DNA from: Bigelowiella natans CCMP2755
Lineage: Eukaryota > Protista > Cercozoa
Assembly (NCBI GenBank): GCA_000320545.1
Contig: ADNK01003286.1
Location: forward strand, 59,867 to 123,866
DNA length: 64,000 bases
Direction of reading: 5' to 3'
Below are positions 2,728 through 55,581 of the stretch, piece by piece. A program made the position numbers and the translations under genes. Within the stretch, counting starts at the first letter, position 1. Every line of letters starts with the position of its first letter. Under the pieces are notes generated by a model that saw nothing but the letters and a program-made list of their open reading frames with translations, ran no database searches and had not been told where the DNA came from.

Positions 2728-3370
2728 CAAGAGGAGGTGTTTATTTGTCGCATCAACAACTGTATCAGTAGTAGGTAGTAGCTGATTATTGAGGACTTTA
2801 ACAATCATTGTCACAAACTACGTACTGATGATCTTTACATCAATTAAAATTTGCGAGGCAACGTACATGCCGATGATTCACATGGCTAGATGGAATTGTT
2901 TGCGTAGCTGATTTATTTGTTATCACTTACTCTGCTGCAATAATCCATCGGTTGCAACAGCTGTCTAGCTGTGATGCATTAAGTGTAAACAAGTCTTGAC
3001 CAAAAGCAGACGTAGAAATTGCATACTCTAGTACTAGCTCCGCACATACGATCTTGTACAGCATTTCCAGCATCGCGTGGCTAAGCATGCTAGCATGCTA
3101 ATAGTTATTGGTGTTGTAGGTAGAATTCATGCATTGCATTGCTCGAGCTGCATCAGCGTAGCATGTGCGCGTATCTAGCGCATGTTTAGGGAGCGAGTAG
3201 GTTATTAGGCGGTGCGGCTCATCTAGCTCATGCTGCACGCTAGCTAGCTAGCACGTATCTCAACATGTGTAGCGTGAATAGCCTTAAAACAATTGCACTG
3301 ACAAGCAGCGATATCTAGAACTCTACACATAGCTGTCAGGCTACACGAGCATAATGGCAAGCTCTAGAGC

Positions 3371-3437
3371 TGCATAGCTACATCAGAATGGCCATTGAAT
3401 TTTTAAAATTTATTCATTACATCATCATCCGTCTCAT
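3371..3437 (+). mobile_element. Short 3'-terminal fragment of the LINE family
   Basis: Its reverse complement (atgagacggatg..gtaatgaa..ttcaatggccattctgatgtagctatgc) matches the LINE terminus at 13670-13735. Confidence 0.7.
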
Positions 3438-13555: not shown

Positions 13556-13603
13556 ATGCATAAGACGGATGTAATGAAATGTTTAAATTTTTTCAATTGT
13601 CTA
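13556..13603 (-). repeat. Second tandem copy of the LINE 3' terminus, separated from the element by a degenerate (TA)n
   Basis: agacggatgtaatgaaatgtttaaattttttcaattgtc versus gagacggatgtaatgaaatatttaaattttttcaatggtc at ~13673. Confidence 0.85.
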
Positions 13604-13669
13604 GGGTATATATATGTATATCGTATACATGTATGTATATATATGTATATGTATATATTTATATGTATA

Positions 13670-15765
13670 CATGAGACGGATGTAATGAAATATTTAAATT
13701 TTTTCAATGGTCATCCTAATGTAGCTGTGCAATGCAGCGGCTACAGCGCTTGAATTGTATCTGTTTGTTTCCTTGGTCACATGGCGCATGCATGTGAATG
13801 CATCATGTTTTGGTCTAGCATGTCGCGCTTTGCGCGCAGCTTCTCGACTTGTTTTTTCTGCGGTTGTGAGGCGCGTGGTCTCATCATTGCGATCCATGAT
13901 CGCCGTCAGTTGTTTGTTGAATCTGAGTCTCTGTGGTCCGCATTTCCTGCATTGCAGAATGTGGTCCACATCTTGCAGTGCATTGCATGTGTCGCATGTT
14001 GCTTCCAATTTTGTGCGTTGTCCTCTGGACAGCAGAAATGTTCCAACATGGCCAACACCACAAATGGCGCGCATCCATGATGTGGCAATGCTTGGCAGCT
14101 TCAATGTGATTCTTGTTGTCCGAGAGCCAGGCATGAAGTCAAGTTTTTTCAAGTGCATTGCCTTGGTTCCCTCTTTGCTCCAGTTTGTTTCGAAGTTGGA
14201 CACCGCGTTCCGCATGATCGGTTTGTTGTGTGCATTCAATTTCCTTTTCAGTGTCTTGTCATTGGCACGTGTTGTGGGGTGTTCCGCTCCAAGCAATTTG
14301 GTCGTGATCAAACTGAGTCGTCGGTGCAAGGATGCTCTGTTCCACGACCTAGTTGTGTTGTGCCATTTGTGTTCCAGCAAGGATTCAATGTGGTGCTGTC
14401 CGAAAGAGCTCCAATTGAGCACTTCTTCTTCCACCACGTGTCCGTTGCCATCAACATCCTCCACCCATGCATTGGTTCGCAACCATGTCTTGGCACATTG
14501 AACTTGTGTGCGATGACGTGGTGGCAACTTGCCGCTAGCACATGGGGTGTGTCGTTGGAAATGGATCCTGCTAGCCTGGTGCGATCCCAGCACTCTTTTG
14601 AGTGTTTGTGATTCCATGGAATCCAGCTGCTTCACTTTGAACAAGTTTTTTTTTATATTTTGGACCTCCATGTGGGTGCGACACACCTGCTTGTGGCTGT
14701 GAACCACGTGTTGCAAAACTTCAATCTCACATTGAATGGCATGTGAGATCGTGTGGAGCACAGCCTGAGTGAGAATCTTCTCTTTTTCTGCAGCTTCAGA
14801 TGTGCAACAAGGGCGTGTTTTTCGAAAGTTGATCTTTCGTCAAACCATGGGCCCAAACACTTGCCACATTCTTTTCTTTTCATTTTTCCTTGTGGGTTGA
14901 GTGTTGTGTTCCACAAGGCTTGTTTTTTGTGTGGATCCTTCCTCCTGTCCACGAGGAGGCATCCACTCTTTTCCCCATTGAATCTCATTCGCCACTTCAT
15001 GCACCAGGTTGTCACACTTGTCAGATCTTTTTGCAGCCTGGTTTGCATTTCCCCCCAGCGGGATGGCGCAAATGGTTCATGTGGGGTGACATCGTCGCAG
15101 TGCATCTGATGGTCAGCAAACTTGATGTGCTCGCATGTGTCGTGGTGGGCGATGAACAAATGGCAGCTGAGGGAGGATCCTTCAGGTGCGTCGCTTTGCA
15201 GTTGCACGTGTTGTGACAGCATGCTGCCAAATTTGAATCTGGCAGTGCGCTCCCTTGGCCAGTCATCGATCCACAGAAGCAGGCATCCCCTTGCACCACA
15301 TTTTTCACTCAGTTTCCGCACCATTCCTGAATGCCAGGCTTCAGGGCAAGCTTTTGATGCGTCAGTGAATGGCATGATGCCGATCAGTTTTTTGTCAAAC
15401 ATGCCGTCTTCGATCCGCTGAGTCATTCTGGTCAGCGCTGTCTCGCATGACCTGTTCTTCATGAAAGCGCATTGATGTTTGCTCAGCTTCTCTGGTGGGA
15501 TGGCTTCGCGCAGTCGAAGTTCAACCAATTTGTCTTCGACTTTCGAAGCAATTTGGAGAAGTGAAATTGTTCTGCCGTTGAGGGGAGTGTTCAATTCTTT
15601 TCCGGGTTTGGGCATCAAGCAGAAGACGGCAGCTTTTTGTGATTTGTGACGGGTGCCCCATTGAAATGATGCATTGAAAACAAGAGCCCAGAGTTGATGC
15701 AGCTTGTTGCTTTTCTTCAACGTGTTCACATGCATGTGTGAACATGTGCATCTTTCACTGGGCAC
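13670..15765 (-). mobile_element. Decayed, 5'-truncated non-LTR retrotransposon (LINE): RT domain plus C-terminal CCHC knuckle; frameshift near 14650
   Basis: RT motifs LMPKPGK, RTISLL, HQCAF, DASKAC, PEGSSLS, HCDD (for YxDD), W..KWRMRFN.EKS and KCLGPWFD. C-terminal CDTC..DVDHILQC. Confidence 0.92.
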
Positions 15766-16446
15766 GTGCTAGCGTGTCCCAACCTGCTAGCCTGGTAGCC
15801 AACCACAGTCATGCGCCTGCCCATGGACTGCTGCATCTCATTGTGCTCAACAAATCTGAAAATCCAGAAAGTGCTGCAACATGCATCGATCGTGTCACAT
15901 GTCGTGATGGAACGCGTGAATGTAGCTAGATGGGATCGCATCGACGACGACGTGTGCAAGCTAGCAAGCAACACCATGCGCACTACTGGACTGCTAGACC
16001 ATCATGTGCACACATCGATCGAGCTGCTACTGCACGCAGTGCACCATCCGCATGCGTGCTAGCGTGTGCCATGCGTGCCGCACGTGCCAACTGTAGCCAA
16101 TCTAGCAATGCGACGTACGATACGCGATCTAGCGATTTTCGATCTGCATTTGCCTAACCCTAGCAGCCTATGCTAGTTACTTATCCGTGCATAAGCGATG
16201 CCGCTAGCCTAGTATTAGCTTAGGCTAGTTGGCTGCTTTTGCGCAGTAGCGAAAGACACTGCTAGACTGGCTCGTCTACCTATACACAGCAGCTCGCCGT
16301 TCAAATGCACACGAAGCGACGTATGCATGACATCGAATGATGCAACGTTACACCATATTGAATCAAACGATTTGAATATGATGAAAGATCACTCCGTGTC
16401 TGTCTCATTTTGACTACCTAAAGTGAGTTAAAAACTGCCGCGGCGG

Positions 16447-19288
<2,842 letters not shown>

Positions 19289-25541: not shown

Positions 25542-25610
25542 TAGCGCTTCTTCTAGGTTCTTTACGTGCTACTTTATTAGCGCTTCTTCTAGGTTCTTTA
25601 CGTGCTACTT
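25542..25610. repeat. Direct duplication of 33 bp (36-bp period)
   Basis: tagcgcttcttctaggttctttacgtgctactt occurs twice with a 'tat' spacer. Confidence 0.95.
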
Positions 25611-25619
25611 GGAGAGACG

Positions 25620-26271
25620 TGCACAGTGCAGGCTGCTAGCGCAGGCGGGTGCACAAAGCGAAGCAAGTGCAACAAGCATGTGCAAAAGGATTTGGGGAAA
25701 GTTCCTGGTGAAATTCAATCATTTGACTCACAAAAAAACCTCCATCATGCACTGCAACAAGCTTGCTTTCGTGCTTTCTTTTTTGTTTGACAGTTCCGGC
25801 TTTCAACAGGTTCACGTGGTCATCTCCACTTTTCTCTCGGTTTCGGCGCGGCTTTTTCTTTTCAATTGCTTTTTTCACCACTTCACTACTTTCGATCAGC
25901 AGGCTGGCAGGTTTCAGTCGACTCTTGCTGAAAGTTTTGTCTGACGCACCTTCCAACGTGCACCTTCTAGCCTTGCAGGCCTTGTCAGGTGACAACAAAC
26001 GTGTGACCGCGTGTGCCATCCTGGTGTGTCGCCCTTTCTGAAGTCTTGAAATTGCCCAGTTGTTTCTCACCTTTGAAACTCACAGGATGACCCAATTTGC
26101 ATCTCACCATCTTGCCTGCCTCGCATGAATCACAATCCCCATCCTCCTCACAAGGGACTTCTGTGTTTTCCAACTCCGCATGGTCTTCGGATGCATGCTC
26201 CAATGAAACAATGAAACAATGATGAAAAACTACCAAAGTGTTGCAAGACACTTGCAGTGTCCAACTGCCGA
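25620..26271. other. TpA-depleted relic (degenerate repeat or coding remnant of unknown origin)
   Basis: Only about four TA seen in ~650 bp (two CTAG, two CTAC). Overlapping Tyr-free ORFs on both strands. Confidence 0.55.
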
Positions 26272-26415
26272 TGATCCATGGGAATTTTGTCCTGCGACTT
26301 GATAAATACTTCTTTTTGTTGATCCATGGGAATTTTGTCCTGCGACTTAATAAATACTTCTTTTTGTTGATCCATGGGAATTTTGTCCTGCGACTTAATA
26401 AATACTTCTTTTTGT
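26272..26415. repeat. Tandem minisatellite, 3 x 48 bp
   Basis: tgatccatgggaattttgtcctgcgactt(g/a)ataaatacttctttttgt, three copies. Confidence 0.97.
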
Positions 26416-30648: not shown

Positions 30649-31044
30649 ACGGATGTAATGTACATGTTAATTTTTTCAATTGTCATTCTTATCTAGTAAT
30701 GTAGCTTTATTGCAAAGCAGCGGCTACACAATATCTAGAATATATGCCCAACTAGCCAACGCATGCTTTATAAGCATGTAACAAAGTAGCCAAAAAATCT
30801 ACGTATCATTACTACAGCTATTATGCATATGCTAGCTATGTGATGACGTTGCTGTCGAACGGCAAGCTTCCTCTAGCTAGCTAGTCCTGTCTAGGCTGTG
30901 TGTGTCTAGATGACTTATAGCACATCTAGACATAGACATGCATGAGACGGATGTAATGATTACTTTAAATCTGATCAACAGTGCTCGTGCTCATCCTAAT
31001 AGTGTGTATAGCTATGCAATACGGCGGCTACAGCGCTTAAGTTG
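30649..31044 (-). mobile_element. Two degenerate 3'-terminal LINE fragments (30649-30729, 30941-31044)
   Basis: Both carry acggatgtaatg...(c)ggctaca, matching 13674-13755. Confidence 0.7.
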
Positions 31045-31567
31045 TCCACACACATCTAGACATGCAGCCTTCGCTGCACGTAGCCGCAGCTTTGCAAAGT
31101 TCGCGACACACAGATGCATAGTTGCAAGGCTGTGCAGGCCTGCATTTGCTCTGGCTCGTCTAGTCGTCTAACTAGTAAATATGAGAGTGGCTGCCTTATT
31201 GTATGTTTTGCATAATACATAGGGTGTCCCTTATAGCCAGGAGAGCTTATTAGCTGGACGACGATTCATCGCTACATTGCCCGCTTTTACACAGAGATAT
31301 CATGTTGCAGCTGGATTTCACCCTATTCTATGAGTCGCAATAATGTATTGCTGACAAGTACATGATGAGATACAATTTTTCGCTCAAACCATCTTCGTAG
31401 TTCTACAGTCCGTGCAGTCTATTATTGTATTCGAGCGTTTCACGCAAACACTGCTGCATATTAATTTAGGAAGCACTTTCCTGGCTTTACCCACTTTAGC
31501 ATTGCCCTTTTTTTCTCCTGAAGGAGTATCTTTCTTTCTACCTTTGCCCCTTATACTTGGGCGACTT

Positions 31568-42931: not shown

Positions 42932-43009
42932 GTTTTAATTCATCAATCTACCGACTGAATTCCATTGTCGCAAGTGTAAAATGGCTTCTATTTAGAATAC
43001 AAATTAAGA

Positions 43010-44200
43010 AGAAGTGGCTGCTGCTTGCGACGACCAACGGAATGACCAAGTCACCAGCATGTTGAGCAAGCGCTTCTTGAGAACGACGAGGAGGGGGGAC
43101 AGCAAAACAAGCAACAAAGAGATGCCATTGAACGACGTAGGCGAGAGAATGGCACAATGGACAAATCTCGTGGTTGACAGTTTCATTGCACAGTGTGATG
43201 CTAGGATCGATGGTTGCTTCCTGCCAGCACTCACAGACCTTGTTTGCAAAGCACATGCACACACATGGCTTTTGCAAGGCGTTCTGTTCACACACACGTC
43301 AGCAAATACTGATATCAAGTAAAAGTCGCTGCCACATTGATGTAGCAGCAACAGCGATGCAGTGCACATGCACAAGCACAGGCGATGTGCGTGTGGTCAT
43401 GCACGCACGCGTGTCAGACAACAAGTGCGCGTTGCCATGACGTGTCCGCCTTGAGTGTGCCAGTCAAGCAGTGTGGCACCGAGACAGTCATCGTTGACCA
43501 TTTTGTGAGTCCTAGAGTCATGGTCACGGTCACGTAGGAAATTGAAGACACGGATGTTCGCAGCTGCAGCTGCACGTCTAGACATCTCGATCTGGACACC
43601 TGCACTCATGGTGCACGCTGTGTGCATGCACACGCATCGCTAGATCGCTTGTCGCTTGCAGTGTGGGCCCATGTCAGTGTGTCATCGTGCTTGCGCTGAA
43701 CAGGCAAGTTTGCGCATGGATGTTGTTGCTTGTCTTTGTTTGCGTTTTCATCATGGATGCATGGGATTTGGGATTGTGCACATTGCATGTGCTCTGGTGC
43801 TCTAGCTAGCTAGCTAGTGCTCACATTGCATCATGCCGAACCGTCCGGCCACACGACACCCAGACATGCTAGCATGATCGACGATCAGCACCGACAGCTG
43901 TCGTCTAGTCGTGTGCGCGCGATGCACGTATCGTACGTGCGTTGCACGTGCGCATCATGCGATGTGCATGCATGTCGATCTGTGCTCATCATACATGCTA
44001 GCATGTATGCTGCTTTAGTGCTCATGAGCGCATGCAGCAGCACTGCTAGCTAGCTAGCTAGACTGTGATGGCATGGCTAGATCTGAGATGGCCATTGTGT
44101 GCATCGCAGCGCGGAGCAGACTTCGTCGATCGTATCAAGTGCGGCAGCGCCAGTGTATCGTACGTCGATCATTCACAGCTAGACAGGCTAGCAGGCTAGC
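43010..44200. other. TpA-poor, CTAG-array-containing intergenic relic
   Basis: Long runs without TA. Cys/His-rich, nearly Tyr-free overlapping ORFs. (CTAG)n arrays at 43802 and 44046. Confidence 0.6.
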
Positions 44201-44202
44201 CA

Positions 44203-45208
44203 CTAGCTAGCAGAACGCAAAATGACAGCAGACATCACAACCTTTGAATCATGAAACAATGCACAATCAGGGCTAGAAAGCTCTAGGATGGCATTATAGT
44301 GGGTTAGATGGGTTGCATGCATTGAGATGTACGCACATCCATCGCGAATGATCGATAGATAGCTCATTATAGCGCCATTGTTGCCGTCCAAATTGCTGTC
44401 ATTCAAGTGTTGACGCATCGTTGTAAACCCCATTCAAGGAAGCCATAGCAAAATCAATCAAGGATCCCCCCTATCCATGCCATAGATAGGCGTTGCGGGC
44501 TGTCGTATGAATGTAGATAGAGTGGGAAAAAATCAACCCACTTTTATAAGAAATATGCATCCTTTGCATGTGTTGTGTATGGAATAATAATGCAGTACAT
44601 AAGGCAAATCCCCAGCTCCTCTGATAAGAAGATATTGATACACTGGACTGCCACTCAGCCACATGCCCCAAGTCTGTGTCCATGAAACGATATGCATACG
44701 ATGCGCACGGTGCACTTTTGTTGGGAAAAGCATAAATGGAGACGTACTTGCATGATCAGTGTCGCTAAACCGGAGGCAAGTTCGAAGAAGAGGAGTTATC
44801 AGATTGCTGTTGGTGCTTTTGTATCCTTCGTTCTGCTTCTTTGGACACTTTGTCCATTTGAGCTTTTAACTTCGACAATGCTGCGTCCATCTGGTTGATC
44901 ACTTTTTCGTACGACTCTAGTTCCTCATCATTCATGTTTTTTATCTAAAAAACACGATAATAAGTTATTATTTCCTTCCTCCCCTATTGTCTAAGTCCCT
45001 ATCCTCTCTCTTATTCCTTGATTAAAGATACCTCCTTCGGAGGAATGAGATCGATGTTGATACCAAGCTTTTTCATTTGGGCTTTTACATCTTCTTTCTC
45101 GTCTCCATCCCCAAATATAGATCCTAACTCCAGCTCTGAAAAGCTTGATTTGAATAATGCGATTGTTGAACCCCTTGCATCGCTGAGGAGAGCTCTTTTT
45201 TCTGCCAT
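44203..45208 (-). CDS. Putative gene of unknown function (3' structure unclear, possibly decaying)
   Basis: Exon MAEKRALL...LIPPKE|gt, then an AG-bounded exon IKNMNDEELESYEKVINQMDAALSKLKAQM.... Divergent from CFAP46. Confidence 0.45.
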
Positions 45209-50400: not shown

Positions 50401-53400
50401 CTTCCACAAAGCTTGGCAAAGCCTATATGGAAAGCCAGAGTTCTTTTCTTGCTGAAACTAGGTCAAGATGTGGAAAGAGACATTGTGAACATCGGCCAGG
50501 ATAGTGGCGACGTGTCATTGAGGGCAGGACTCTATTCTTCTCTCGCAAAAGCTTCCGCAAATAAGGAACAACAATTTGAGTTTTATCAAAAAGCCCTTGA
50601 AACCATTGGTGAGACCGGTAATCCACTGGACAGTGTTGACATGCTAGTGGAGTTTGCAGAGTGGGTATACAGCAACAACTTAGGGAGAAGAACCACACAG
50701 GACCAGCTTCTTACAGCAGCTGACTTGTTGCTGGATGCAGACGATTCGTTAGCAGAATTTGAAAATGAGGGCAAATCGAAGAACGCAAGCATTAGATCGA
50801 GGACTTCCAAAGGTATTATAATTATTATTATTATTCTTATTATTATTCTTATTATTATTATCGGCAGCCACATGCAACATGCTGATGAGTACGTCTTTCT
50901 ACTGCTTCTTGTGGCCATATGTGTCTTTGTTGTCTAACGCTGCATTCATTTTAAGAACATGCGCAAAATGAGCATTTTCATGCTATCCCTCTCGATTTCA
51001 CATAAGTGGTAGCTGCTTCAAGAAGTCATTCAGCAAAATCACACACAATTTTTAGGCAGCTCTCGAGGATCATCACGGGGTTCAAGAGGCTCCGCTGCCA
51101 GCCAAAGTATGCAAAAGATGTTTGGCTCTAAAGCAAGTGATCAGAAGTCTCGAAGGACTCGCTCTTCCAGCAATATTTCGTCAAAGATGTCAAGAGCCTC
51201 CAAGAAAGGCCCTCAGGTTAAAATGCCTTCAACCATTACTATTGGTCAGATGGCAAATTTGGTCCGTATTTATTGTATGCTTGCGACGATAGCTTCCAAC
51301 AAGCAGCACTCGTTGCGTCTGGCCCTCGTTGCACATAGCTTCGTAGAGAAGATATGGAAAGTCTCGGTGCAAAGCGTTAACCTGGAGGTAGAGTGGAAGC
51401 GCAAAATGGCAGCAGCAGCAGCAGCAGCAGCAGCCGAGGAGAAAAAGGATGATGAAAAAGACAATGCTGATAGTAATAAGGATGGGGTTCCAGCTGCTGG
51501 TCCTATTTCTTGGTCTACTCCAAGCATGCCTGACGCCTGGATACATTGGCATTTAGACGAAAAGCTGCGACAAGCATTCAGATCTTGTAGCTTTGAAGGC
51601 ATGGTACCGAACAAGAAATCCGTCAACAACCCAGAGAGCTTGGTGTACTATCTGAAATGGCTGCATAAGATCATGTTAGATCGTGGCTACGTGCTGCAAA
51701 GCCTTCCTGTTTTGGCGCTCCTAGAGCTTCTTTCTCTTGATGTGTCGTGCAACTCAGAGCTGACTGTTTTGGCTCGTCTTCTTCGTGCTCAAGTCTTTGA
51801 AATCCTGCATTTACCCAGCAAAGCAAAGGAGTGTTGCGTTTCTGCAGAGCCAGTATTGCCATATAAGGAGCGGTTTGTGTTAAACAATGAGAGGGTTGAG
51901 CAGAGAGAGACGCTTAATGAACTCATTATGAAGCAGCCAGACATTAGTAAAGGGTCTGGAACAAATCACACTGCGACAAGCAAACAAGGATGTATTGGAA
52001 CGGGGAAACTCTCGGACAACTTCCCTCTTACCCCCATCCTTAAGAGAGAGAGGATGATACTCAAAAGAAACGAATCGCAGGGGATCTGGATTGAAGTTGG
52101 ATACCAGTTGCTGCGGCGAGGCCGTATACGCGAGGCAGTCAGATTGTTGAATCTGGCAAAGCGACATGCGGAAGCATTTCAAGATACCACAGTTCTGATA
52201 GAGCACAGAGCCATCATGGCCATTGTCCACATGATGGCCGGGAATCACGAGTTTGCTGTCAAGTTAGTGCAGCAAGTTCAGTCTATGGAAGGTAATAGCG
52301 ACTGGTGGATGAAGGTTGTGCTTATTCTGTCCTCCGTATACCTTGGATTTGCTTTCCCAATACTGCCCGATATGGTTGGTCTGGATAACCCTTTCATCTT
52401 GCACCCACATCAAACACCAGACCTGCACACGTCGTCATCGTCGCCTACAGCAGGGCATGGTGCTGATGGCCACGAAAATAGCAATAGCGGTGATAAGAAT
52501 ACGATTAGCATGTCAGAGAACAGCAAAGACTTAAAGGGCCAGGCAATTCAAGTATTACGGAATTCAATCCGATTATTTGTAGCATTAAGCCAAGGCGAGG
52601 CCCGCAACACTGCTGGAGCCGACTATCTGCAGAAAGCAGCCATTCTTCAAAGGATCCTTGGCGAGGTGGTGACAATGCCTTCTCCTTTCTCCTTCTCATC
52701 TACCAAGCTTCTTTCGCAGCCAAGCAAAATGATAGCACGTGTGTCTCAATTTATGCTGGCATTCCAGATGCTGATTGAAAGCTCTATAACCACGGAGATG
52801 TTGTTCGATCACCAAAACACGATTCTCCTTCTACGTTCTTTAGCTCACGTCCTCCGAAAGGCTTATCTCTCCCCGAATGAAATTCCAGCAATTCACGACA
52901 CGCTACGCCGTGTTCTTCGCAACAAGCCACACCTTAATCCTTCCAAATTCCCCATCTTGAAACTTATCCAATCCGTCCCCGAAGATGCAGATACCGTGCA
53001 TTTGACAATAGCCCAACTAGTTCTGAGACATGCAGAAACTATGGCAATGCAGGCAATGCAGACGGTATTGCCATCCTACACCCCCCCCTCAATGTCGCTA
53101 CCAATGGCAAGACAGCTACAAGACATTAAATTAGAGCTGCTGCATATCACCACGCTTCTTAATATGGAGACACACTGGTTGACAATAGAGGCCAATCCGG
53201 TAGATGCCGATATTAACTCTGCAGGTGATGAAAAAACCGTAATTAACGCTCTGCTCACAAAGCATTCACGGTACTTCAAAGAAAAACATGTGGGAGTGCC
53301 GCCAATTCAAACCGGAATTATGATGGTGCATACCGCTACTGAGGCCAAGAATCTGTACACGTCAGGAGTGATAAAGCCGAGGCAATCAAGGTCCATGTGC

Positions 53401-55581
53401 TACATGGGCAGCGGCTACGTGCAAATTGCCATGGAGATTATGCTTGATTTCAACGATGGGAAAGAGGCAGACGATCAGCTCGGGATATGGGTATCTCTTC
53501 CTGAATCTTATAATACCACCGTCCAGGAGCCCAAAAACAAGGTAGAAAGTAAAGGGGGGGAGGGCGACGGCCCTACGAGTGTTGAAGGTGGAGATCAGGA
53601 GGAAGAGGCCTCCAAACAGGAGGAGAAAAAGGATGAAAAAGATAACAATCAAGTCTTTCCAGATGAAGAGGAAGAAAAGGCGAAGCAAGCAAGAAGACAG
53701 CTGCTTACATTGCAAAGAAACGTGTGCGATGAGGTTATTATGAATGGAAATAAAGCTTTACATTGGTTCTGCTTAGCAATTGAATCGGGACTGGAGAGTG
53801 ATTCCATGCAAGTTGTGAAGGAGGTCAGCTTGCAAGCCATGTGTATCGTCGGAAAATGGCAACCACTACTTACGGCAAAGCTGATGCATCTTTATCAGAG
53901 CGCAAAGCTGCGTATACATGCGAATGGGTTGTTTGTACAATCAGTAGGTGCGAAGAATCCGCAAAGACTAGCATTAAGTAGATTGGAAAATCTACAATTA
54001 TCGGAGTCCCAGCACGTATCCCCTGAGGAGACTAATAAACTCTTACTTTATTTGGAACAAAAATCAAACGCATATCGTCGAACGGACTTAAGAGTAGCAG
54101 CGAGAGATGGTAATGCCGAGGCAGAAGCAAAAGAAGCTTCTCCAGAAGAGGAGGGAGAAGAGGAGAACTCTAGTGCTGGTAGCTCAATGGCAACACCATA
54201 TGCTGAAGAAAGCATCCAATTGTACCAGAAAGATTGGGGCCAAATGCTCGACAAGCTGCTAAGTGCTAGCAGCAGCAAGAAAGTTGCTTACATCTCTCTT
54301 ACATATGTTCCAGAGCATCACTGTCTCTACGGCTTTTTAACAACAAACGGACATCAATCCAACGATGATGGCAATGATCCTGTTGATGAAGCGGAGGCTG
54401 GCCAACAAGCTCCCCAGTTCCAGGTCGCACGTCAAGTCTTCACACGGAGACAAGAGGACGAATTCCGACAGCTGCAACTGCGACATCATAAGTGGAAAAA
54501 CGTGCTAAAGCGTCAGATATGTACGTATGGCGATTCCGAAAGGCAAGAGCTCAAGCAAAGCGAGGCTGAGCTTTCAGCAACCGTTACTAGATTTTCAGCC
54601 CTGGTTTCACCTCTGCTTTCTGGGCTCGGGGTGACGACAACAACCACAAATGGAACATGCGAGGAGGTGGAGGATTCGAAGCAATCGTCAGGAGGACAGA
54701 ATGTTGTTGAAAAGAAGTGGGCTGATGATAAGGATGTGATACTAGTCTTGGATACTTCTCTCTTTGAGCTTCCCTGGGAGGGGTTAGAATGCTTCAAAGG
54801 AGCAAATAGTCTCAGCAGGAGCTTTTCCTTAGCAATGACATATCATCAACTTATTAGCTCAGAAAAGCAGGCTGAAAATAATGCGGGAGCAAAGCAGCCG
54901 ATTGGATATGTAGTAGATCCAGAAGATCCAACAGAGGAGAAGCAGTTGTCACATTCATTCAAAGAATCCATTGCAGCAGAATCTGACAAGTGGAAGGGGG
55001 TTCTCGCAGGTGACAACGACGATACTGTTGTTGTTAGTGATGGTGAGTGGCAGCAACTTCTTCTAGATGCAAATGCCTTCTACTTTGCGGGATTTGGAAG
55101 AATTATGTCTCACATCTCGAGCTTGTATGTGGCTCCTCTGGATCTTTCCCAGATCAGATTCACAGTGATAAACGACAAATGCTCGGTAGAAGCCAGCAAT
55201 CGTGTCCAGAGTAAGCTAGATAACCAAAAAACCGAGTTGCAGCTACAATTCGAAAGCGTGTATAACACCGCTTTGTTGTGGTCGCTGTGTGGGGTTAACA
55301 CTGTAACAATAAATCAATATGCTATTTCTGTGGAATCGAGTGTCGTGTATCAAAAGAAGATGCTGAAGGACTTAGTCTCGGGGCAAGGCCTTGCTTCTTG
55401 CATCACAGCTTGGAGAAGTGATAATAGTGACGCAGATTCAAAGGATCAGGGTAAGGAAGAGGCGAAAGAAATCAAAGAGGGAGAGCAACTTGGAAAACAA
55501 AAAGAGATAGGCAGAATAAGGCGACGTCTATATGACAGGCTAAATCCCATTATGTGCGGCGTCATCGGGGCTAAGCTGTGA
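45891..55581 (+). CDS. CFAP46: Cilia- and flagella-associated protein 46 (TTC40)-like
   Basis: N-terminus MDTVHFRATLADLQRARDQQ|DLNLLRNAF, then ELLVMVAEC...PPRDQFWCR and YGHLVYNATVLYW...GYRVHLL. TPR-like giant exons. C-terminal LVLDTSLFELPWEGL..SLSRSFSL and GVNTVTINQY. Recognised from memory of the family. Confidence 0.85.

Follow-up and report, generated by a model that had tools for sequence, protein, structure and literature searches.

Near-complete loss of TpA and tyrosine from a truncated LINE copy in Bigelowiella natans, consistent with TpA-directed hypermutation

The 64,000-nt stretch of Bigelowiella natans DNA analyzed here (the window) contains a reverse transcriptase (RT) frame of 370 codons without a single tyrosine. 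Comparison with other copies in the genome makes it very probable that a LINE inserted, already 5′-truncated, into an intergenic spacer and was then nearly saturated by the TpA-specific A:T>G:C hypermutation of this species. That process is already known for B. natans, including its link to RT genes (Mettrop et al., 10.64898/2026.01.13.699255), and the locus is an additional example rather than a new system. It adds an illustration at the protein level and a natural dose series of copies; the series strengthens the preprint's case, hitherto indirect, for transposons as targets, and yields testable details of sequence context, apparent 3′-first polarity and leakage into the flank.

A truncated and silent LINE copy

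The limits of the element (Table 1) were taken from homology with longer copies: it begins at about 15726 and runs to a shared 3′ terminus at about 13672. ORF1 and the endonuclease half of ORF2 are absent, the cut lying immediately before the RT. The limits of the 370-aa frame are artefacts of later insertions and not the element's own ends: the GTG with which it starts and the ~13 codons at that end belong to flanking DNA, directly after a TAG within a CTAG scar, and the 8-nt insertion at its other end probably postdates the last editing. The frame scores 33 bits against RVT_1 (cut-off 29.6), while a Pfam search with the C-terminal part of ORF2 gave no match. No target-site duplication was seen by eye, the 5′ flank being heavily edited. 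With an HCDD active site, a truncation, frameshifts and an RNA depth of 0-0.5 over the RT (vs. 15-57 for the exons of the adjacent GAPDH gene; one RNA set, sampled at 6%), this copy is dead.

Table 1. Features of the LINE copy and its surroundings (window coordinates)
Feature	Coordinates	Strand	Remarks
5′-truncated non-LTR retrotransposon (LINE, subfamily A)	13672..15726	-	RT and C-terminal region with CCHC-type knuckle
370-aa frame, 0 Tyr	14653..15765	-	flank (~13 codons), then RT region (~355 codons); terminates in insertion
8-nt A/T insertion	14654..14661	-	provides the frame's TAA stop and two of six residual TA
CTAG between 4-nt direct duplication	14567..14578		belongs to 10-nt insertion 14571-14580, second frame shift
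Catalytic motif HCDD	15091..15102	-	YCDD in intact sister and outgroup; His codon 15100-15102
C-terminal part of ORF2	13694..14515	-	within 355-aa frame 13694-14761; also TA-stripped
Single-copy 5′ flank, TA loss reaching ~380 nt in	15727..16110		
(AT)n-like tail and second 39-nt copy of LINE 3′ terminus (13563-13601)	13563..13671	-	largely not TA-stripped
GAPDH gene, last exon	16450..16725	-	normal TA content, expressed; outer limit of edited zone

The family shares with APE-type LINEs an ORF2 with Exo_endo_phos_2 and RVT_1 domains (seen in the sister element L038 and in the outgroup P0001; the endonuclease is truncated in the window copy), a CCHC-type knuckle, variable 5′ truncation, a common 3′ end and a simple-repeat tail. 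It differs from them in the lineage-specific YCDD, in PEGS for PQGS and in KAYP for KAFD, and the window copy, with HCDD, lacks their intact (Y/F)xDD.

The last ~150 nt of the LINE (window 13563-13775) showed very high contig depth in DNA runs, as well as RNA reads that end in poly(A) at 13601. This signal probably comes from many tail-only copies together with a host transcript whose end is the duplicated terminus. Short tails related to that of the LINE lie at 3371-3436, 30649-30728 and 30943-31045.

Loss of TpA from the element and its flank

The preliminary description of this locus had noted the absence of Tyr from the 370-aa frame and listed a series of altered RT motifs; the translation indeed contains no Tyr, and all the motif strings named are present. 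Zero Tyr in 370 residues has a probability of 7e-7 at the Tyr rate of the intact sister and of 3e-5 at a rate of 2.9%. Since Tyr codons (TAY) always contain TpA, Tyr vanishes, to His or Cys, wherever TpA is lost. The frame has one TA where ~66 are expected, leaving 1,114 bp free of TpA, and the interval without TA from 14656 to 15770 is the longest such gap in the window (the runner-up measures 534). Over the element body (13760-15726), 6 TA remain vs. 119 expected. The observed/expected ratio of TA is 0.08-0.13 at 14-16 kb, where CA and TG rise to 1.5-2.0, and 0.46-1.26 across most of the window, two further low patches aside.

The depletion extends ~380 nt into the single-copy 5′ flank and ends at the 3′ tail. 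All 12 TA left in the flank lie in CTAG, CTAC or GTAG, five of them in X-CTAG-X scars. TAA and TAG together occur 15 times on the two strands of the LINE copy vs. 68 in the sister, with TGA unchanged. Because TAA and TAG are lost, long antisense frames have opened within the LINE (13755-14501 and 14153-14611, both on the + strand), which are not genes. More generally, TA loss removes two of the three stop codons, so that dead copies display long open frames and are called as genes, a caution for annotators.

A second TA-stripped repeat lies at 25601-26300 (TA observed/expected 0.11), with matches of ~70% at at least 10 other places and, at its right end, a short tandem unit found at at least 28 places; its minus-strand frame resembles, by eye, a Copia-type pre-integrase motif, for which Pfam gave no support. 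The region 43001-44300 is a TA-poor, CA/TG-rich patch with many CTAG scars.

Copies at different stages establish the direction of change

At least 40 places in the B. natans genome are related to the window LINE (best 84-95% identical), with staggered 5′ starts and one common 3′ end followed by (AT)n-like tails. One family member, JGI Bigna1|144798 (P0002, 100% identical to loci L008 and L052), figures by position in Table S8 of the preprint's supplement (10.64898/2026.01.13.699255). The nearest relative outside the genome, in a Logan assembly, is 46% identical, and all others are ~25-35% identical. Among the genome's copies no family-A element with complete Tyr was found, and the closest full comparator is therefore only 66% identical to the window copy. 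This is subfamily B, found by protein search of the genome, which includes at least 13 young copies that are 99.3-99.9% alike, have long open frames, mostly of 1179 aa, and hold 13-14 Tyr in full RT regions; young B loci are L036-L047, L050 and L056, on contigs C2167, C1129, C3306 and others. The comparators were natural unedited sister copies, not a consensus or a repaired frame, with L038 as the reference in B. Such copies give the direction of change independently of an in-silico reversion, which would presuppose its own outcome.

None of the 58 TA in the RT region of the intact sister is kept in the window copy, and 36 of them read CA or TG. The sister's 14 Tyr have become 7 Cys, 4 His, 2 Phe and 1 Ser, and the same Tyr codons in 29 paralogues read His, Cys or retained Tyr. 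TA is thus the ancestral state, as the preliminary description had proposed from the motifs. At 66% identity, part of the difference between sister and window copy is ordinary divergence, which makes the test within B cleaner.

Young B copies have 0-7 of 156 TA converted relative to L038. In L049 (C1193:60715-64791), a copy caught mid-process, 53 of 156 are converted, with three other substitutions in 3242 nt; in L058 the figure is 58 of 67, and in L060 139 of 145. The change is specific for TpA: the five other dinucleotides tested in L049 (CG, AT, GC, AA and TT) were barely altered, with 0-1 changes per 150-425 sites (CG 1/157, AT 1/212, AA 0/425, TT 0/154), excluding both decay of CpG and an overall bias towards A>G. 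Family A behaves in the same direction, with 97 columns dimorphic for CA/TG, against 18 with the control pair, and a third state that is TA in 188 copies vs. CG in 61. RVT_1 scores were 68 bits for the intact copy, 57-59 for edited B copies, and 39 and 33 for A. As to whether long copies are more heavily edited, the correlation in 28 copies did not reach significance (Spearman -0.29, p 0.13).

CpG decay would require that CG gave rise to TG and CA without TA ever having been present. CG is the third state in 15-20 of the 97 dimorphic columns of family A, and decay may explain these. The contrast between CG (1/157) and TA (53/156) within one and the same copy nevertheless makes it next to impossible as a general account, as do the Tyr codons that are conserved in sister and outgroup, read His or Cys in the family, and are kept as Tyr in some copies.

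Both strands are affected. The products CA and TG number 69:70 in L060, are interleaved along copies, and split binomially across five B copies. CG, the product of a double conversion, is seen rarely, in keeping with a target that disappears at the first hit. Since both strands and the unique flank are hit, the change occurs in DNA. This bears on the possibility of an ADAR-like A-to-I editing of the LINE transcript, later fixed by reverse transcription. The element does pass through RNA, and ADARs prefer U before A, as stated in the preprint (10.64898/2026.01.13.699255). RNA editing predicts TG on the sense strand only, though, and it would not deplete a single-copy flank; the preprint's mutation-accumulation lines, moreover, show DNA mutation in DNA that is not of retroelement origin. 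We consider this explanation highly improbable.

Which motif changes belong to the window copy

The preliminary description read eight motif differences as single TA>CA/TG products, and took the one at the active site to mean that the catalytic motif had been struck. Five are borne out as changes of individual copies, because paralogues show the reciprocal product or a kept TA: KAC (6 His, 2 Cys, 1 Tyr in paralogues), LFIAH (6 His, 3 Cys, 2 Tyr), STF from TTA>TCA (11 TCA, 3 TTG, 2 TTA), WP from CTA>CCA (CCA vs. CTG/TTG) and GA from GTA>GCA (GCA vs. GTG/GTA). KCLG does not derive from KYLG: the motif reads RCLG in the intact sister and RALG in the outgroup P0001, and Cys occupies the position in 15 of 16 family-A copies, so Tyr was never there in this lineage. 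QCAF, carried by 8 of 8 family-A copies, is probably no change of the window copy itself either.

For HCDD the outcome is mixed. The Cys is native, as the lineage's catalytic motif is YCDD in sister and outgroup, leaving only the His to be explained, and this His is of the TA>CA type. It is common to the covering family copies: the codon is of CA type in 11 of 11 family-A copies (changed further to Arg in one), among them the least edited ones and one with the neighbouring TA intact. Edited B copies at the same Tyr gave 2 His vs. 5 Cys (Fisher p 0.002 against family A). As HCDD and QCAF are found throughout family copies whose lineages are up to 12% apart, both probably predate the window insertion, and our favoured view, held with reasonable rather than full confidence, is that HCDD was inherited by family A. 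Sites of family A with proven TA often yield one product only (from 3/27 to 15/56), so a master with Tyr, followed by repeated independent His outcomes, is a possible alternative. Whichever the origin of HCDD, the window copy shows no targeted kill at its active site, contrary to what had been claimed.

The two sublineages of family A, both of which include copies with HCDD, are separated by 26 synonymous and 8 non-synonymous fixed substitutions, vs. 29 and 43 private ones (p 7e-4). The contrast argues for purifying selection on the masters of the sublineages, under which subfamily A may have been mobile with an HCDD active site.

One might suppose instead that His and Cys are native to a functional family throughout, or that TpA was lost through selection on codons or composition. 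Native residues do account for KCLG and the Cys of YCDD, and probably for HCDD and QCAF in subfamily A; among 146 distant RTs, three have His at the catalytic position and 14 have QC. But most Tyr sites are His/Cys dimorphic with Tyr retained in some copies, and the loss is independent of frame and reaches the non-coding flank. As a general explanation, either version is very improbable.

Sequence context and CTAG scars

Conversion is slower at CTAG, CTAC and GTAG. In B, 64% of TA were retained in CTAC/GTAG vs. 18%, and in A 65% in CTAG. In the preprint's mutation list (10.64898/2026.01.13.699255), A>G rows in TAG context look scarce, as judged by eye rather than by formal count.

Many of the residual CTAG are nevertheless not survivors but later insertions between 4-nt duplications, and the CTAG excess is made up of spared sites plus small insertions. 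CTAG occurs in 15 of 38 small insertions in A copies, and 156 of 747 CTAG in the window and the loci lie between 4-nt direct duplications, vs. 0.5% by chance. There are 43 such sites window-wide, including 14567-14578, 15765-15776, 15783-15794 and 15957-16269; they look like excision footprints. Gain of CTAG by substitution in edited copies found no support in B. Runs of (CTAG)n were observed at 3240, 21922, 22189, 25482, 30873, 43802, 44046 and 55845.

Editing appears to proceed from the 3′ end

Over the last ~550 nt of young B copies only 5 TA are left, whereas their 5′ and RT parts have 11-24 per 300 nt; in the outgroup element the density is uniform (13-23 per 300 nt). In L049, conversions from 5′ to 3′ amount to 0/37, 0/25, 2/19, 14/31, 21/23 and 15/17, and the few conversions in young B copies cluster directly upstream of the stripped tail. 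Editing thus looks 3′-first. Several 3′ sites keep TA in older B copies and have CA or TG in common among 10-13 young copies; at others the young copies are divided 9:4 or 7:4. The simplest reading is that 3′-edited masters continued to retrotranspose and that partly edited copies kept multiplying, although gene conversion or collapsed repeats in the old assembly could mimic shared edits. We tentatively suggest, at a little under even chance, that the mutator enters LINEs at the 3′ end, which is shared and present in high copy number, and moves on towards the 5′ side, and that partly edited elements stay mobile. If so, TA erasure would be an incomplete, cyclic defence that reshapes living elements too.

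The tails of L010, L024 and L030 switch abruptly from (AT)n to (GT)n, which may reflect processive conversion of one tail strand or a repeat that was compound from the start.

Relation to known hypermutation and possible mechanism

Mettrop et al. (10.64898/2026.01.13.699255) report de novo TpA>TpG/CpA mutation ~1000-fold above background in B. natans mutation-accumulation lines, with 231 de novo mutations in two viral inserts, all but one of them A:T>G:C and described as located on TpA; the process was caught on integrated NCLDV and virophage DNA, and RT and endonuclease-RT domains were enriched among TpA-poor coding sequences. The window LINE agrees with it in species, substitution, dinucleotide and involvement of both strands. 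Two further hallmarks recur here: both products, TpG and CpA, lie on one strand, in the window LINE and in its copies, and the change falls on foreign or mobile DNA and not on host genes. The accessible part of the preprint contains no comparison of LINE copies; the copy series, the 3′-to-5′ gradient, the flank leak, the sparing of CTAG/CTAC/GTAG and the inherited edits come from the present analysis.

In the sequence of events that we propose, a 5′-truncated LINE entered the spacer, after which the A of TpA on either strand was changed to G, to be read as TG or CA. A site normally changes a single time, since its TpA is then gone. TAY thereby becomes His or Cys, and CTA, TTA, GTA and ATA become Pro, Ser, Ala and Thr or Met. 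Editing would be aimed at silenced repeat chromatin; H3K9me3 together with H3K27me3 marks transposable elements in B. natans (10.1101/2025.03.17.643675). For the chemistry we lean slightly towards a TadA/ADAT2-type enzyme that deaminates adenine to inosine. An ADAT2-like adenine deaminase is also proposed in the preprint (10.64898/2026.01.13.699255), with structure-based candidates only.

That TA loss serves genome defence, the preprint's own proposal, is plausible. The same pattern might, however, have another cause, such as error-prone synthesis during repair, or base modification within silenced chromatin, and be a by-product and not a selected defence; this departs from deaminase-based defence only in the inferred steps, and we hold it to be possible, if less than probable. 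In its favour, the enzyme is a candidate only, young intact copies persist, 3′-edited masters seem to have kept spreading, and editing is most intense in the 3′ part, beyond the RT core on its downstream side. The process does not quickly stop subfamily B, in which an intact RT region is found in at least 13 young copies; and since the window copy was non-autonomous through its 5′ truncation before being edited, editing gained the host nothing here. On the other side, strict TpA preference fits TadA-type deaminases, and AA (0/425 in L049) is untouched, unlike the WA signature of polymerase eta, a mutagenesis that can be rejected as such on this ground. The on/off behaviour between mutation-accumulation lines described in the preprint also suggests regulation.

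Beyond Mettrop et al., a further literature search returned fungal RIP papers only. RIP likewise makes saturating, dinucleotide-specific, both-strand transitions in repeats and leaks into unique flanks. Its direction is opposite: RIP turns CpA into TpA and creates stops, whereas here TpA, Tyr, TAA and TAG are lost and CpA and TpG gained, giving an adenine-directed, AT-to-GC hypermutation that is the reverse of RIP. RIP also depends on a homologue of cytosine methyltransferases (RID/DIM-2) and on a premeiotic stage of a sexual cycle, while in B. natans, according to the preprint (10.64898/2026.01.13.699255), clonal lines acquired the mutations, and a viral insert present as a single copy was among the targets.

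Other observations in the window and the genome

More than 100 places in the genome share an identical RVT_1 score and open frames of 1659 aa, and seem to represent a very young, high-copy and unedited retroelement. Host genes in the window include an OCRL/INPP5B-like gene with ASH and RhoGAP domains (1666-2727), the GAPDH gene (16450-16725) and a gene for a large protein with a Peptidase_C50 match (51109-55581), which may be CFAP46-like.
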